64,000 nucleotides of DNA from IMGVR_UViG_3300019458_000020:186814-250813, one strand, 5' to 3'. Shown: positions 8,005 to 37,681, numbered from the stretch's first letter. The notes: a model not told the origin generated them from the sequence alone. Program-made: numbers and translations.

Positions 8005-8126
8005 TGGTGGTTGATGTGGAATTGAACCACACCTTCGTAATATTTTGCAACCTTTTCACGAAGTCCTGACCTTTACTCAAACGATTACTTACGCGTTTCA
8101 TCGTTTTTTCGCTTTCAGTTTCAACC
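8005..8126 (-). ncRNA. 122-nt tRNA-like RNA E with two non-tRNA hairpins
   Basis: Acceptor GGTTGA/TCAACC, T arm TGTGG-TTCAATT-CCACA, ACCA; inner stems AAACGAT/ATCGTTT and CTTCGT/ACGAAG. Confidence 0.7.
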
Positions 8127-8211: not shown

Positions 8212-8295
8212 GTAATGAGGATAGAATGTTGGCTTCGGTGTTTTCACCGTTGCCTTTAGAAACCTATGTTGGTTTAATATTCATTCTATTAATAA

Positions 8296-10428: not shown

Positions 10429-10836
10429 TGGTGGACCTAGTTGGAGTTGAACCAACGTGTTGAAAACCAAAGATATCCAGCAACTACATGTTTAGTTCGT
10501 TTGTGTATTCGCCTGTATGATAAACGAACAAACTGTCAGGCATAGATTGGCATACTGGCCTTTCGAATCAGTCTTGTAATTAAAACCACAAGCAGTTCTC
10601 CCTCTGTTTTACGCCGTTTTTGACCTAGAGGAGTCAGTCAATACGACGGAACGGATATTAGGCCGCTACTGCGTTGAATTCGATTTCAACATTATTCATA
10701 TTGAAAGAAAAATCAACATTTTGCAAACGAGTAAGTTTAGCATTTATTTTTCCGTCATCTTTTTTAAGAGGCCAGACGACCAACCTCTACATGCTCTGTG
10801 TATCCTATAATCTTCAGTCGATACCATTATAGGCCC
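10429..10836 (-). ncRNA. ssrA: tmRNA, predicted tag AKLTRLQNVDFSFNMNNVEIEFNAVAA
   Basis: 5' GGGCCTATAATGGTATCGAC, 3' GGTTCAACTCC..TAGGTCCACCA with G3-U70; ATAAAT-GCT resume context at 10741, UAA at 10660-10658. Confidence 0.93.
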
Positions 10837-17978: not shown

Positions 17979-18053
17979 TGGCCCTTAACTTAAAGGTGAA
18001 GTAGTGTGCTCATAACACAACGAGTGTAGGTTCGAGTCCTACAGGGCCAACCA
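17979..18053 (+). tRNA. tRNA(CAU), probably Ile2 (lysidine type)
   Basis: TGGCCCT/AGGGCCA acceptor, CTCATAA loop, GGTTCGAGTCC, ACCA. Confidence 0.85.
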
Positions 18054-18762
18054 TTTCATGTAAACCTGCATGCGTTTCAGCATGACAATTTTTACATACA
18101 CAAATACACTTATCCAACTCAACCTTTAACATTTCCCACGAATAGGTTCTAAGATTGGATATGTTGAATTCTTTCTTGGTTGGGTCAATATGATGAAAAT
18201 CCAATGCACCGATGTATTTGTTATATCCACAAATCATACATTTGCCACCTTTGTAATCTACACACTTTTGTTTCCGTTCGGTTTGCTTTTTTAATGAAAT
18301 TCTGTTATTACACCGTTTACACCAATAATGAAATTTTCCATTTTTCTTTAGATAGAAATTTTCATTTGTCAATGTCTTTTTTTGATTACACTGAGAACAA
18401 GTTTTATATCCTTCTTCTATCTCTTTCTTAATTTTTGTTCTTAATATTGTCCATTGTGGATTGGTTTTCAAACCATAAATGTTTAACCAATAACGGATAA
18501 CACATTGGCTACAATTTAGTTCACGGGCCATTTTATGAGTAGAATAATTTTGTCCAATGTATGTTTCTAATTGACATTTTTGAATCTTTAATGGTTCTCT
18601 TTTGTGTATAGTTTTTAACCCTAACTTTCTAAAATGACCCTTTATTGTTGACCAAGGCACCATCATTTCGTTGGCTACTTGTTTTGTAGTATATCCATTA
18701 TTGATGAAAGATTGATACTTGTCTTTTAACTCATTAGTTATATTTATGGTAATAACTATCAA
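18010..18762 (-). CDS. HNH homing endonuclease with HTH repeats
   Basis: CSQC..WCKRC; KCMICGY..ALDFHH..CVCKNCHAETH; convergent on the tRNA. Confidence 0.85.
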   Translation of the reverse strand: MIVITINITNELKDKYQSFINNGYTTKQVANEMMVPWSTIKGHFRKLGLKTIHKREPLKIQKCQLETYIGQNYSTHKMARELNCSQCVIRYWLNIYGLKTNPQWTILRTKIKKEIEEGYKTCSQCNQKKTLTNENFYLKKNGKFHYWCKRCNNRISLKKQTERKQKCVDYKGGKCMICGYNKYIGALDFHHIDPTKKEFNISNLRTYSWEMLKVELDKCICVCKNCHAETHAGLHEMVGPVGLEPTLVVL

Positions 18763-22714: not shown

Positions 22715-22803
22715 GGGCGTGTGGCGAAGCTGGTTGAACCGCGGCAGACTTAAAATCTGCTACTTAGGAAACATCGGGGGTTCGATTCCCTCCACGCCTA
22801 CCA
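22715..22803 (+). tRNA. tRNA-Leu(UAA)
   Basis: GCAGA-CTTAAAA-TCTGC, long variable arm, GGTTCGATTCC, ACCA. Confidence 0.95.
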
Positions 22804-23545
22804 TTTTAGGGTCATGTCTTCGGGACCAAATATTTATCTTCTTGACATCAATACCATTTCTAAGTGCGTGTTTTTTAACACTACTAGCAGATACTTTTAA
22901 TTTTCTAGCAACTTCTGATATGGGATTGTTGGATAATAGAGAAATCATTTCTTCATTTGAAGGCCATTTGATTTTTATCTTGAAAACATTTCCAACAGAT
23001 GAATAACGGCTTCTTATGGTTTCTATTCTTTTTTGTTGTTCTTCATAAATTTTCGATTGTAGGAAATGAATTCCACGTTTTTCAATCAAATCATTGATTC
23101 GGTAGTAGTTTCCCCCATAACCAACAAGTCCACATTTTAATAATGCTTCTCTTCGTGTATAAGATGATTCTATGGATATTATCAATTCTTCATCCGTGAC
23201 GTAATGGCCTTTCTTTTGTTTTTTTCTAGCTCTATAATTTGGAGTCAATGCATGACAATTACAACAAAAAAGTTTAAGATTTTCCAATTCATTATTTTTT
23301 CTATTGCCATCGACATGATGTAATTCTAACGGAATTGATTCATTTTTCCATTTTGTCAACTGGCAACCTTCACATCGATGTTCTTTTACACCATCTTTTA
23401 TTAGTTTAAGTTTTAATCTAAAAGTTGTCATGGTTATACATATACAACAAGTGTGAGTTCTAGTTAATTTAATTCTTGACTCTCTTTGAAAATCTGATAC
23501 TCTCATCCTATGATTGAAGTTCCACGACTTCCACGGATTACTCAT
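22760..23545 (-). CDS. HNH homing endonuclease
   Basis: HRCEGC..PLELHHVDGNRKNNELENL..CCNCHA; convergent on tRNA-Leu; true start uncertain. Confidence 0.85.
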   Translation of the reverse strand: MSNPWKSWNFNHRMRVSDFQRESRIKLTRTHTCCICITMTTFRLKLKLIKDGVKEHRCEGCQLTKWKNESIPLELHHVDGNRKNNELENLKLFCCNCHALTPNYRARKKQKKGHYVTDEELIISIESSYTRREALLKCGLVGYGGNYYRINDLIEKRGIHFLQSKIYEEQQKRIETIRSRYSSVGNVFKIKIKWPSNEEMISLLSNNPISEVARKLKVSASSVKKHALRNGIDVKKINIWSRRHDPKMVGVEGIEPPMFPK

Positions 23546-24236: not shown

Positions 24237-25331
24237 ATGAAAATTGATTTGGCTTCGATTGACCGTGAACAATTCATGGTTCACGAACACATTCTTTTTG
24301 GGGAAGTCGTGTATCTCGTCCAACCACAACATATTGGTTGTAAGTGGACACAGGCCAATAAACATCTCCGGTCTGCTGTCTTCAATTCTGAAGGTGAACT
24401 GATTTCAATGGGTTTTCCCAAATTCACAAACTGGAGCGAAAACCCGGACAACTTCCCTGTTCCTACTTCTCTGAATGGTTGTAAGGTTATGGAGAAGCTT
24501 GATGGTTCTCTTTTGATTGTTTCCAAATACAAGGGTCAATTCATCCTTCGTACTCGTGGCACCATTAATGCCGAAAACCTTGACAACGGCCATGAACTGG
24601 CTTTGTTGAAACAGAAGTATCCAGAAATCTTTAAGTTTCAATCTTGTGGAATGGAAACTTGGCCGTTTTCTCTTTTGTTTGAATGGGTTTCTCCTATTAA
24701 TCGAATTGTTTTGAGTTACGGCGATGAAGCGGATTTCATTTTGGTTGGTGGTATCTACCATGACAAATGCATTCTTTGGGACCAAGAGTGGTTAGACGCA
24801 ATGGCCAAGGGTTTTGGTTGTAAACGTCCGATTACATATAACTTTCCTTCTGTAGATGACTTAATTGCCAATGTTGACCAGTGGAAAGGCAAAGAGGGAG
24901 TTGTTATCTATTCCAAAGACGGTCAAGCTCTCCATAAAGTTAAATCGGCTTGGTATCTCGTTTTACATAGAATGAAGGAATCCTTATCATCCATTGATAA
25001 AGTTGTGGATGTTTGGTTTGTTCAGGGGAAATTACCATATCAAGAATTTGAAGAATATATTACATCGACTTTTGATTGGGAATTGTGGAATCAAATTCGG
25101 GGAGAAGTTAGCCAAATTTGTGATGGTTGGAAAGAAGTTCAACGAATAGTTCAAGGTATGAAATCGTTCGTTGAACCGCTAAATACCTGGTCAAGAAAAG
25201 ATGCAGCAAAAAAGATTATTGATTCATACGGAATCACTAATCGAAGTTCCTTTTGTTTTCAATTGTTAGATGGAAAAGAATTATGTGACGATGCTCTAAA
25301 AAAACTTTTGTGGCAAGTTCTCAAAAAGTAA
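24237..25331 (+). CDS. RNA ligase, T4 Rnl1-like
   Basis: FPKFTNW..EKLDGSL (motif I)..FEW..EGVVI..KVKSAWY. Confidence 0.88.
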   Translation: MKIDLASIDREQFMVHEHILFGEVVYLVQPQHIGCKWTQANKHLRSAVFNSEGELISMGFPKFTNWSENPDNFPVPTSLNGCKVMEKLDGSLLIVSKYKGQFILRTRGTINAENLDNGHELALLKQKYPEIFKFQSCGMETWPFSLLFEWVSPINRIVLSYGDEADFILVGGIYHDKCILWDQEWLDAMAKGFGCKRPITYNFPSVDDLIANVDQWKGKEGVVIYSKDGQALHKVKSAWYLVLHRMKESLSSIDKVVDVWFVQGKLPYQEFEEYITSTFDWELWNQIRGEVSQICDGWKEVQRIVQGMKSFVEPLNTWSRKDAAKKIIDSYGITNRSSFCFQLLDGKELCDDALKKLLWQVLKK

Positions 25332-29126: not shown

Positions 29127-29357
29127 ATGAATTTAACTCCTACAATCAATCTGTATATCTCGCCTCGGGATATTGAAGCCATTTCCTCGGGCCAACCGGT
29201 CCAAGCTCGTAATAGCCGAATGGATAATATGGGCAATGACATTGCCCATTTGGTTCAGGTTTCGTTTCCAATCACGGCATACGAAATCATTCCGAGCGTC
29301 CAGAACCTCGGTCTGTTCACCGTCACTCGTATTCGTGAATCCGGCCAATTTTCTTAA
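29127..29357 (+). CDS. hypothetical protein
   Basis: Own promoter. Confidence 0.6.
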   Translation: MNLTPTINLYISPRDIEAISSGQPVQARNSRMDNMGNDIAHLVQVSFPITAYEIIPSVQNLGLFTVTRIRESGQFS

Positions 29358-29361
29358 TAAA

Positions 29362-29943
29362 ATGATTATCGTTGGCGACATTCACGGCCGATACAGAAAG
29401 CTTAATGATATCGCCCGTAAGCACAAAGACCAAACCATTGTCCAGATTGGTGACTTTGGTTTCGGCTTTGGAGAAATGTTTGATCTTGACGGAAGCTTAA
29501 TCGAAAAAAACATTCGATTCTTTCGTGGTAATCATGACAATCCAGAACTGTGTAACAAGCATCCTCAATCACTCGGCGACTATGGAGTGTTTGAAGGAAT
29601 GTTCTTTGTTGCAGGAGCAGATTCAATCGACAAGGATTTGAGAATTGAAGGATTGACATGGTGGCGTAATGAAGAATTGACGATGCAGCAATTCAATGAC
29701 GCCATCGACCAGTATAGTCATGTGAAACCAGAAATCGTTTTATCACATGATTGCCCACAACAAATTTGTACAGACTTCTTCGGTATTCCCGAATCAAGTA
29801 GAACGCGGCAGGGATTACAAGCCATGTTGGAGATCCATCGTCCCAGAGTTTGGATTTTTGGACATCATCATCGGCATTTTGCAAAAAATGTAGATGGATG
29901 TACATTCCGTTGTCTTCCAGAACTACAAGCATATCAATTATGA
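29362..29943 (+). CDS. calcineurin-like metallophosphoesterase
   Basis: GDIHG, GDFG, GNHD, SHDCP, GHHH motifs; true ATG at 29362. Confidence 0.92.
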   Translation: MIIVGDIHGRYRKLNDIARKHKDQTIVQIGDFGFGFGEMFDLDGSLIEKNIRFFRGNHDNPELCNKHPQSLGDYGVFEGMFFVAGADSIDKDLRIEGLTWWRNEELTMQQFNDAIDQYSHVKPEIVLSHDCPQQICTDFFGIPESSRTRQGLQAMLEIHRPRVWIFGHHHRHFAKNVDGCTFRCLPELQAYQL

Positions 29944-36787: not shown

Positions 36788-36848
36788 ATAACGAACATAT
36801 CACAAATAAAATAATTGTCAATCGCATTCTTGTTATACATATCAGATA

Positions 36849-37681
36849 TGACAAATACATTAAAGACCGAAAAGATAAGTGGAATATACAAAATTATCAA
36901 TAATATCAATGATAAATACTACGTTGGTAGTTCAAATAACATTTACAAACGATGGAAATATCACAAGCAAGATTTAAATCGAGGCAATCACAGGTCACAA
37001 TATTTGCAACGTGCGTGGAACAAATACGGTGAAGATAATTTTACTTTTGTAGTCACCGAATTAATTATATTGGATGAATTACTTTTACAAATAGAACAAG
37101 AATATCTTAATATTGCTTGTCAAGAAAAGGAAAAATGTTATAATTCATCTTTTGTTGCTGGAAAAATTGAAATGAATGAGATTACGAGAAACAAAATAAG
37201 TCAATCTCACAAAGGAAAGAAATTATCCAAGGAAACAAAAGAAAAGTTACGGCAATGTAATTTAGGAAAAAGATTATCAGAAGAAACTAAAAAGAAAATT
37301 AGTGATGCACACAAAGGAAAAGTTTTAAGTCAACCCAAAGGATGGCATCATACCGAAGAATCAAAGAAAAAAATTAGCCAGAAATTAAAAGGAAAATATG
37401 TTGGAATATTGAGTCATAAATTTGGTACTAAACATACTGAAGAATGGAAAAAACAATGGAGAGAAAGACTGAAAAATCATCATCCGAGGTTAGACAAAAC
37501 TGTATATCGATTTCAAAACGAAGTTACCAACGAAGTTTTTGACGGGTTGCAGTTTGATTTTAGAGTAAAATATAACATTCCTCCAGGAAATTTATGTCAT
37601 ATAATTCGAGGAAGGAGAAAATCTATACAAGGATGGAAATTGGTGGTCCGACCGGGATTCGAACCCGGAACAAAGCTTTAG
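36849..37681 (+). CDS. GIY-YIG homing endonuclease with NUMOD3-type repeats
   Basis: SGIYKI..YYVGSS..HRSQYLQRAWNKYG; repeated SxETKxKIS..HKGK; convergent on tRNA-Arg. Confidence 0.9.

Follow-up and report, generated by a model that had tools for sequence, protein, structure and literature searches.

Several classes of RNA keep the ends of a transfer RNA without decoding. The tRNA-like domain of tmRNA (RF00023) is a tRNA top half without a decoding anticodon arm, processed by RNase P, in an RNA that also has pseudoknots and a tag reading frame with a resume codon. The tRNA cluster of phage T4 contains two stable RNAs, species 1 and species 2 (rnaC, rnaD), which are longer than tRNAs, have tRNA-like ends, are processed by RNase P, and whose function is not known. 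A 1978 catalogue of T-even tRNA-like molecules is reference 48 of PMC11143913. In plant mitochondria, t-elements are acceptor/T-like structures that direct RNase P cleavage within longer transcripts and define RNA ends, and other non-tRNA substrates of this enzyme include the C4 RNA of phages P1/P7 and the M3 RNA of phi80 (PMC1920247; PMC11143913). Finally, large surveys have noted unnamed tRNA-like candidates in phages (PMC10690425), and in recoded phages in-frame TAG codons wait for a phage suppressor tRNA (bioRxiv 10.1101/2021.08.26.457843).

Here we describe a 122-nt tRNA-like RNA gene in a giant phage, located in an array with an amber-suppressor tRNA and four other tRNA look-alikes, upstream of a peptidyl-tRNA hydrolase gene. 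The stretch of DNA analysed, called the window below, is the last 64 kb (64,000 nucleotides) of a 250,813-bp IMG/VR phage record that CheckV rates about 74% complete. A longer assembly of the same phage, of about 341 kb, exists, and the only public sequencing runs holding this DNA are two DNA runs of cave metagenomes, probably the source samples.

Anatomy of the 122-nt element

A sequence-only reading of the window had proposed, at positions 8005-8126, a 122-nt tRNA-like RNA with an 11-bp acceptor/T helix, two long foreign hairpins and no 7-nt anticodon loop. This observation is confirmed: all the sequence features it named are present, although they are read on the minus strand, with the 5' end at 8126 and the 3' end at 8005, a point that had been missed. 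From 5' to 3', GGUUGA (8126-8121) forms the 5' strand of the acceptor stem. It is followed by two A residues, by CUGA (8118-8115), by a 9-nt A-rich segment, and by a hairpin, P1, AACGAU/AUCGUU (8105-8100 / 8085-8080), whose stem can be extended to (A)AACGAT/ATCGTT(T) and whose 14-nt loop (8099-8086) is GAAACGCGTAAGTA in the DNA and GAAACGCGUAAGUA in the RNA. Next come UGAGUAAAGG, which is the AGTAA..GG segment at 8079-8070, and UCAG (8069-8066), which pairs with CUGA to form a 4-bp helix in the D-stem position, also missed by the sequence-only reading. After GA, a second hairpin, P3, CTTCGTGA/TTACGAAG in the DNA (CUUCGUGA/UUACGAAG in the RNA; 8063-8056 / 8040-8033), has a 15-nt loop (8055-8041). 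A single G, the T arm UGUGG-UUCAAUU-CCACA (8031-8015), UCAACC (8014-8009), which is the 3' strand of the acceptor stem, the discriminator A (8008) and CCA (8007-8005) complete the element.

ViennaRNA returned exactly this cloverleaf-like four-way junction as both the minimum-free-energy and the centroid structure, at -30.4 kcal/mol (z = -2.5, 1 of 200 shuffles folding as well). No loop is a 7-nt anticodon loop. A T arm plus 6-bp acceptor plus NCCA of this kind is expected 0.017 times per dinucleotide-shuffled window, against one observed.

The element was not reported by ARAGORN, even with introns allowed or thresholds lowered, nor by Rfam at gathering thresholds or at E up to 10. When introns were allowed, ARAGORN proposed a tRNA-Thr with an 87-nt intron for the 186-nt neighbour described below, but the D and anticodon stems were mismatched and the proposal is unconvincing. 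No tmRNA match was found over 8005-8126, whereas the true tmRNA of the phage (10429-10836) scored 107.5 bits. For plant-virus 3' tRNA-like structures (such as RF00233), which have a pseudoknotted acceptor arm at the 3' end of an RNA genome, there was no match on the element, only a 15-bit chance-level hit on the neighbouring true tRNA, and the genome is phage DNA.

Two other identities were considered and rejected. A tmRNA-like reading, with a short internal frame ending UAG-UAA, was excluded because two of the three aligned family members have no G3:U70 and because there are no pseudoknots. A conserved GUU in the P3 loop was examined as an anticodon, but neither the loop size (15 nt here, 13-15 nt in the homologs) nor the flanking bases are those of an anticodon loop. 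A search of the genome for perfect complements of the loops returned only the element's own opposite strand.

The array and its relatives

The element is one unit of a head-to-tail array on the minus strand. After the intrinsic terminator of the upstream gene (8359-8332), a sigma-70-type promoter (8322-8295) has TTGACA at -35, a 16-nt spacer and TATAGT at -10, matching 11 of 12 positions. A leader ORF (8284-8264) starts with an ATG at 8284, only about 10 nt after the -10 hexamer, and contains five further sense codons and then a TAG (8266-8264) in the conserved context ACA-TAG-GTT-TC. A small conserved hairpin, CGGTG-AAAA-CACCG (8249-8236), separates the amber codon from an amber-suppressor tRNA (8211-8136, anticodon CUA) with encoded CCA, found by ARAGORN and scoring 66.3 bits with the Rfam tRNA model. 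The 122-nt element comes next.

Downstream of it are four more tRNA-like units. A 55-nt mini tRNA-like (7999-7945, mini D of the sequence-only reading) has a 7-bp acceptor, a 5-bp hairpin with a UUUAG loop, a T arm and ACCA, and scored 24.9 bits with the Rfam tRNA model, below threshold. A 186-nt tRNA-like RNA (7941-7756) has a large conserved interior. A 53-nt mini (7750-7698) has its T arm replaced by AGAAG-UAGGA-CUUCU. A second 55-nt mini (7696-7642, mini A of the sequence-only reading) is the last. Units are 2-6 nt apart and each ends in NCCA. Every tRNA of the genome found in our scan encodes CCA.

The array leads into pth2 (7614-7222), which has an in-frame TAG at codon 6 and no visible Shine-Dalgarno-like sequence upstream. 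Its product scored 84.5 bits against TIGR00283 (Pth2 family), above the curated cut-off of 82. The match starts at residue 16, upstream of the Met that gene callers take as the start, so that the true start lies before the amber codon.

Using Pth2 as an anchor, we retrieved about 150 loci (designated L followed by a number) from IMG/VR, JGI metagenomes, ENA and Logan. Nearly all show the same plan: promoter, leader with ACR-TAG-GTT-TC, suppressor tRNA, a variable set of tRNA-like units, then pth2. The TTGACA..TATAGTTAT promoter sequence is conserved in L005, L006, L007, L009, L170, L171 and L173. In L009 the leader hairpin is AGTGA-GAAA-TCACT, a compensatory change read directly from the sequence, and in distant relatives the leader motif forms the N-terminus of pth2 itself. 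The 186-nt RNA has homologs in L005, L006 and L173, and the 53-nt mini in L155 and L171.

The 122-nt family was found in L009/L010 (127 nt; L009 3694-3820), in L019 (128 nt; 698-825), where it is the only unit between the suppressor tRNA and pth2, and in L170, as a 108-nt version without P3 (2141-2248) plus possibly a second one of 91 nt. The family is small, with three clear members plus one or two in L170. Once acceptor and T arm were removed, the interior of the window copy aligned to L009 with z = 5.9 (0 of 2000 dinucleotide shuffles) and to L019 with z = 3.8 (7 of 2000), but not to an equally long, unrelated unit of L005 (z = 0.1). These loci are diverged, their Pth2 proteins being about 71% identical to that of the window.

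RNAalifold on L009 and L019 gave 24 pairs, 9 of them with changes on both sides. MAFFT misaligned the stems, and the three full-length members were therefore aligned by hand: of 31 pairs, 19 show double compensatory changes and only 3 cells are non-canonical. This alignment was fitted to the structure, so that the pair counts lean towards it, and three sequences are few. The D-position helix is conserved (ACUNA/UNAGU, with G-C in one member, A-U in another and A-C in the third). The P1 stem differs in every member (AACGAU, GGAGAU, AUGGA, GCAUAU), while the loop, which begins GAA and ends AGUA, and the AGUAR that follows it are kept, as is a GG just before the 3' strand of the D-position helix, where G18G19 of a tRNA would touch the T loop. 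A GAA strand facing an AGUA strand next to a helix is the sequence signature of a loop-E (bulged-G) module, an inference from sequence only.

A descriptor of this signature found it only inside such elements, with 3 hits in 2.1 Mb against about 1 in shuffles; L019 misses the strict descriptor through one C-A closing pair. The homolog loci gave no Rfam match at E up to 1, and neither the 122-nt nor the 55-nt family is recognised by Rfam 15.

Other searches added no member. Exact and degenerate DNA patterns run against IMG/VR returned only unrelated coding sequence, the first degenerate pattern having a spacing that does not fit L009 and L019. A covariance model built from L009 and L019 was dominated by generic tRNA features and scored the window copy (28 bits) no better than ordinary tRNAs; run on the phage's own record it found nothing, not even the element itself, a result that is uninformative. 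A protein search with the translated array found only three partial relatives, none containing this family.

Whether the homologs would prove to be a decayed ordinary tRNA with no conserved interior structure had been named in advance as the outcome that would refute the sequence-only reading. The opposite was found, since the homologs keep interior helices by compensatory changes and keep the P1 loop. A pseudogene with junk insertions, or a chance pattern, is thus very unlikely, even though the stack has 11 bp instead of 12, no detector calls the element and the folding z-score is modest: the homologs sit at the same place in the operon with compensatory changes in every helix and a conserved loop, the pattern is rare in shuffled windows, and stop codons are excluded from one frame (see below).

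The sequence-only interpretation is nevertheless only partly supported. A tRNA-like RNA gene with a tRNA top half and a non-tRNA interior is supported. Of the two foreign arms, however, only P1 with its flanks is the family signature, since P3 varies in sequence and is absent from L170. A common origin with the minis had been inferred from the TTCAATT T loop, shared with mini D, and from the GGTT start, shared with mini A. Neither feature is conserved within the family (homologs have TTCGAGC and TTCGAAT loops, and one starts GGGT) and the interiors show no detectable similarity to the minis, so that shared descent beyond a generic tRNA scaffold is conjecture on present evidence. Further features vary as well. 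The acceptor/T stack is 11 bp (6+5) in the window but 12 (7+5) in L009 and L019, the window copy having lost one acceptor pair, and three of five family members lack an encoded CCA (UCA in L019, CUU and GAA in L170) although their neighbours have it, which weakens any role that depends on the 3' end.

These data bear on a purely cis-acting reading, in which the element would be a punctuation mark comparable to t-elements, attracting RNase P and RNase Z-type cleavage or slowing ribosomes, the excised piece having no function of its own. The element keeps exactly the minimal RNase P determinants, in a tightly spaced array in front of a protein gene, and CCA is dispensable within the family. Array composition and order also change quickly: the closest relative, L005 (87% Pth2 identity), has the 186-nt RNA, one mini and the unrelated 121-nt unit, but not this family. 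However, a bare cleavage signal would not need a conserved P1 loop, the AGUAR..GG segment or compensatory maintenance of three interior helices at such divergence, and several other long, conserved families share the arrays. We consider this reading unlikely, although it is the strongest of the alternatives.

An open reading frame through the array

The sequence-only reading had also missed that the element lies inside an open reading frame. From the leader ATG, the frame (8284-7619, 221 codons) contains TAG at codon 7 and then no stop of any kind for 214 codons. It runs through the suppressor tRNA and all five tRNA-like elements and ends in TAA (7621-7619), 4 nt before the pth2 ATG. The other two frames of the same stretch hold 8 and 14 TAA/TGA, and 3 and 5 TAG, and none of 3000 dinucleotide shuffles reached the observed run. 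In independent loci, open runs were of 180 codons in L005 (reached by 3 of 3000 shuffles), 310 in L009 (1 of 3000), 240 in L016 (2 of 3000), 172 in L027 (1 of 3000) and 181 in L002 (1 of 3000). L019, L014, L055, L061 and L015 behave similarly. Other tRNA clusters of the same genome carry a stop every 18-30 codons in each frame, so tRNA-rich sequence is not stop-free by nature.

The frame's stop lies 4 nt before the pth2 start in L005 as in the window (TAA-AACT-ATG), and overlaps it (ATGA) in L019. In L004, L042, L055, L061, L017, L058 and L060 the frame continues in phase through the suppressor tRNA into the Pth2 domain, passing in L055 and L061 through a 189-nt tRNA with a D-loop insertion as well, and a second TAG sits in the same ACR-TAG-GTT-YC context. 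L004 and L042 have no start codon between the tRNA and the Pth2 domain.

Codon phase was then examined. All 15 of the 55-nt minis that lie inside such a frame start at codon position 1, and the minis carry stops in the other two phases in 17 and 14 of 22 cases, but in only 1 of 22 in that phase. The 122-nt element is read in the same phase in the window, L019 and L009 (offsets 158, 164 and 905, all 2 modulo 3). In L009, however, a one-base longer loop creates a TGA and the frame ends inside the homolog, so translation through this unit is not always needed.

Could the stretch simply be protein-coding, as a 221-codon gene or an N-terminal extension of Pth2, with incidental RNA folds? The frame is long, its start codon is close to the promoter, and gene callers do call ORFs across such arrays. 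But it contains a bona fide tRNA, the L009 homolog carries a stop, and the encoded peptide is not conserved, array content and order differing between relatives and a protein search finding only fragments of near relatives. Moreover, the 55-nt units show 16 of 17 pairs with double compensatory changes. The mini alignment was selected by pairing and its 99% paired figure is partly by construction, but the conserved loops and the exact 55-nt length are not. What is conserved is openness and phase, not sequence, and plain coding sequence is very unlikely.

We first supposed that the genome was recoded, with TAG read as Q. This was rejected, as code 11 already gives 82% coverage by ORFs of 100 codons or more and reading TAG as sense lengthens none of the long ORFs. 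We therefore read the two ambers as gates that wait for the phage's own suppressor, rather than as ordinary sense codons.

Possible functions and comparison with known systems

Our preferred, still tentative, explanation is that the element encodes a non-decoding tRNA-like RNA that is also part of an amber-gated switch. One promoter would drive a polycistronic RNA. The element would be cut at its 5' end by host RNase P and trimmed at its 3' end, as for a tRNA, to give a stable RNA of about 122 nt presenting an acceptor/T end and the P1 hairpin to some binding partner. The required sequence features are present (acceptor/T minihelix, U at -1, single-stranded ACCA), and RNase P cuts non-tRNA substrates bearing tRNA-like ends (PMC11143913). 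Without suppressor tRNA, ribosomes would stop at the leader TAG, and the array would fold and be cut into tRNA and tRNA-like RNAs, severing pth2 from its only efficient translation start. Once the suppressor has accumulated, ribosomes would read through, translate the array in the one frame kept free of stops, melt the tRNA-like folds and reach the pth2 start. What the sequences establish is a conserved, structured, non-decoding RNA family with covarying helices, its place in a single transcription unit with a suppressor tRNA and pth2, and selection for one stop-free frame; RNase P cleavage, stability, any charging, the partner and the switch itself are deduced without RNA data. Translation through the element and its accumulation as a folded RNA compete with each other. 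If the array only had to be cleavable or translatable, the conserved P1 loop would be unexplained, which argues for something more than a cleavage site, yet no partner or target was found for an action in trans.

A bolder version, which we regard as doubtful but not excluded, is that suppressor tRNA and tRNA-like RNAs form a translated riboregulator, the same nucleotides serving as RNase P-cleavable folds and as stop-free codons. The amount of active suppressor tRNA would then decide whether each transcript is cut into small RNAs or translated through to Pth2, and the GAA/AGUA hairpin, loop-E-like by sequence, would additionally dock a host or phage protein after release.

A phage that suppresses host amber codons would cause read-through and stalled ribosomes, which fits its carrying both a tmRNA and Pth2. 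The window also encodes a T4 Rnl1-type RNA ligase (24237-25331), and Pth2 and RNA ligase have been grouped as RNA-repair and ribosome-rescue counter-measures of jumbo phages (PMC7824862). The released RNA could be a decoy, soaking up a host factor that attacks or modifies tRNA, such as a tRNA-end-modifying toxin or a tRNA nuclease, with P1 adding specificity. Defences acting on tRNA 3' ends are known (PMC12851939; PMC11541572; bioRxiv 10.1101/2024.07.05.602228), and many acceptor/T minihelices per operon fit a titration role. However, no defence partner was identified, no published precedent for an RNA decoy of this kind turned up, three of five members lack CCA, and fast turnover of array content fits an arms race without being specific to one. 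We hold this to be unlikely.

Even less likely is a charged acceptor which, like the minis, would enter stalled ribosomes with an empty A site, take the nascent chain and drop off, Pth2 then hydrolysing the peptidyl-RNA, in a tmRNA-like rescue without a tag. The tRNA-like domain lacks an anticodon arm, as in tmRNA, pth2 is co-transcribed, and the L009 homolog has G3:U70 with A73, the alanine identity set. But the window copy and L019 have U3:A70, CCA is absent in three members, there are no pseudoknots, tag frame or SmpB-type partner, and no evidence of charging.

Phage tRNA genes are usually read as codon-usage helpers. Here a phage with a standard genetic code carries, in one operon, an amber suppressor, conserved RNAs that keep only the tRNA features seen by processing and 3'-end enzymes, and a peptidyl-tRNA hydrolase, all threaded by one frame behind an amber codon. 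If the inferred switch is real, it is a compact natural circuit in which a tRNA controls its own maturation and a rescue enzyme, and a case of sequence selected at once for folding and translatability. If the released RNAs act in trans, they are a new class of tRNA mimics in the phage-host conflict over tRNA. Literature searches turned up no description of these families, or of an amber-gated frame running through a suppressor tRNA and tRNA-like RNAs, an absence from the literature searched and not proof of novelty. The element itself is a variation on tRNA-like RNAs already described, and the operon design may be more novel.

Compared with canonical tRNA (RF00005), the element shares the acceptor stem stacked on a 5-bp T stem, a 7-nt UUCAAUU loop closed by a G-C pair, discriminator plus CCA, a four-way junction with a short helix in the D-stem position, a GG where G18G19 would be, and a place in a tRNA array. 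It differs by an 8-bp arm with a 15-nt loop in place of a 5-bp anticodon stem with a 7-nt loop, U33 and a purine at 37, by a 45-nt insertion with its own hairpin in the D loop, by the absence of U8 and of a variable region, and by 11 instead of 12 stacked pairs.

The tmRNA tRNA-like domain, which the same phage encodes about 2.3 kb away, shares a top half without a decoding arm and, through pth2, a functional link to peptidyl-tRNA and ribosome rescue, but tmRNA is 408 nt long against 122 and the window copy lacks G3:U70, pseudoknots and a tag frame with a resume codon. The element would work like the tRNA-like ends of tmRNA, the T4 species 1 and 2 RNAs or plant mitochondrial t-elements. The T4 RNAs also sit among tRNA genes, and homing endonuclease genes lie nearby in both phages; they are not known to lie in an amber-gated open frame or next to pth2. 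The t-elements and the C4 and M3 RNAs share acceptor/T structures inside longer transcripts, but are single signals flanking mRNAs or one small RNA, whereas here five units in tandem have conserved interiors and are all kept translatable in one frame. Finally, leader-peptide attenuators and the stop-codon-gated late genes of recoded phages share a short upstream ORF whose translation status decides the fate of the downstream RNA, or in-frame TAG codons awaiting a suppressor. In our phage no terminator/antiterminator pair is evident, the genome is otherwise in the standard code, and the gated frame runs through the suppressor tRNA gene itself and through tRNA-like RNAs.

The leader frame and its amber codons

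On the minus strand, at window positions 8284-7619, and likewise in ten related phage loci (L005, L009, L016, L019, L027, L002, L004, L042, L055 and L061), a leader ORF with an amber at codon 6-8 stays free of all stop codons through the suppressor tRNA and the whole tRNA-like array, and ends at, or is fused to, pth2. In L004 and L042, the tRNA gene sits in frame between two ACG-TAG-GTT-TC repeats, inside the only available pth2 reading frame. A conserved stem-loop is present about 15 nt after the leader amber codon (window 8249-8236, minus strand) and changes compensatorily in L009, and it could be that this structure influences read-through or ribosome pausing.

Despite the presence of an amber-suppressor tRNA and of in-frame TAGs in pth2 and the leader, the phage genome as a whole (G000) is not globally TAG-recoded, as the standard code gives 82% ORF coverage and the same long ORFs.

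Families of tRNA-like units in the arrays

The two minis at window 7999-7945 and 7696-7642 belong to a family of tRNA-like units of exactly 55 nt, of which 20 further copies were found in loci L005-L061, L170 and L171. The family pattern is a 7-bp acceptor, AU, a 5-bp hairpin with a UUYAG pentaloop, UCN, a T arm with UUCAAGU, and NCCA. In this family, 16 of 17 pairs covary, and all 15 copies that lie inside a leader frame start at codon position 1. No Rfam family matches it. A different mini, of 53 nt, in which the T arm is replaced by a conserved AGAAG-UAGGA-CUUCU hairpin, is found at window 7750-7698, and also in L155 (about 1745-1797 and 2122-2174) and L171 (about 676-728).

Longer units share the arrays. 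The 186-nt tRNA-like RNA at window 7941-7756 is also found in L005 (3534-3722), L006 (3373-3558) and L173 (about 1808-1993), with a large interior that is roughly 85-90% conserved, as judged by eye. ARAGORN reads it as an intron-bearing tRNA-Thr, which is unconvincing, and no Rfam match was obtained. At least three more conserved families of long tRNA-like RNAs (about 80-157 nt) occupy the same arrays, at L006 3569-3699, L050 759-892, L171 about 793-925 and L173 about 2005-2130, at L015 686-836 and L016 2200-2350, and in L155 and L157 (GGACAATG...).

In several relatives, tRNA-like genes with otherwise normal D stems carry insertions of 65-115 nt in the D loop (L015 494-679, L055 2223-2411, L061 965-1153, L009 3330-3471, L050 1080-1224, L171 about 432-613 and L155 about 1813-2007). 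Several of these inserts share CACAGCYTGCARGAAGGTG. This is the same architecture as the insertion in the 122-nt element. In addition, tRNAs of unclear decoding, with 8-9-nt anticodon loops containing UUAAAA or UGUAAAAA, were found at L009 3185-3263, L006 about 3826-3905 and L015 494-679.

Other RNA and protein genes of the phage and a relative

Upstream of the window, in the main tRNA cluster, further acceptor plus T-arm plus NCCA elements of 64-77 nt are present at genome coordinates 181287-181350, 182530-182606 and 177224-177298. They are not called by ARAGORN, and several of the tRNAs that are called there are 88-91 nt long. About 2.3 kb from the array, the phage encodes a tmRNA (window 10429-10836, minus strand, 107.5 bits), with an unusually long predicted tag of 27 residues. 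In a related phage contig, L170, a GOLLD RNA with an embedded tRNA (3849-4308, Rfam RF02032, 170 bits, above threshold) lies about 1 kb downstream of pth2, whereas none is present in the window.

Finally, a T4 Rnl1-type RNA ligase (window 24237-25331, plus strand), a metallophosphoesterase (29173-29943, plus strand) and three HNH or GIY-YIG homing endonuclease genes (18010-18762, 22760-23545 and 36815-37681) are scattered among the tRNA genes, an arrangement that resembles the T4 tRNA region.
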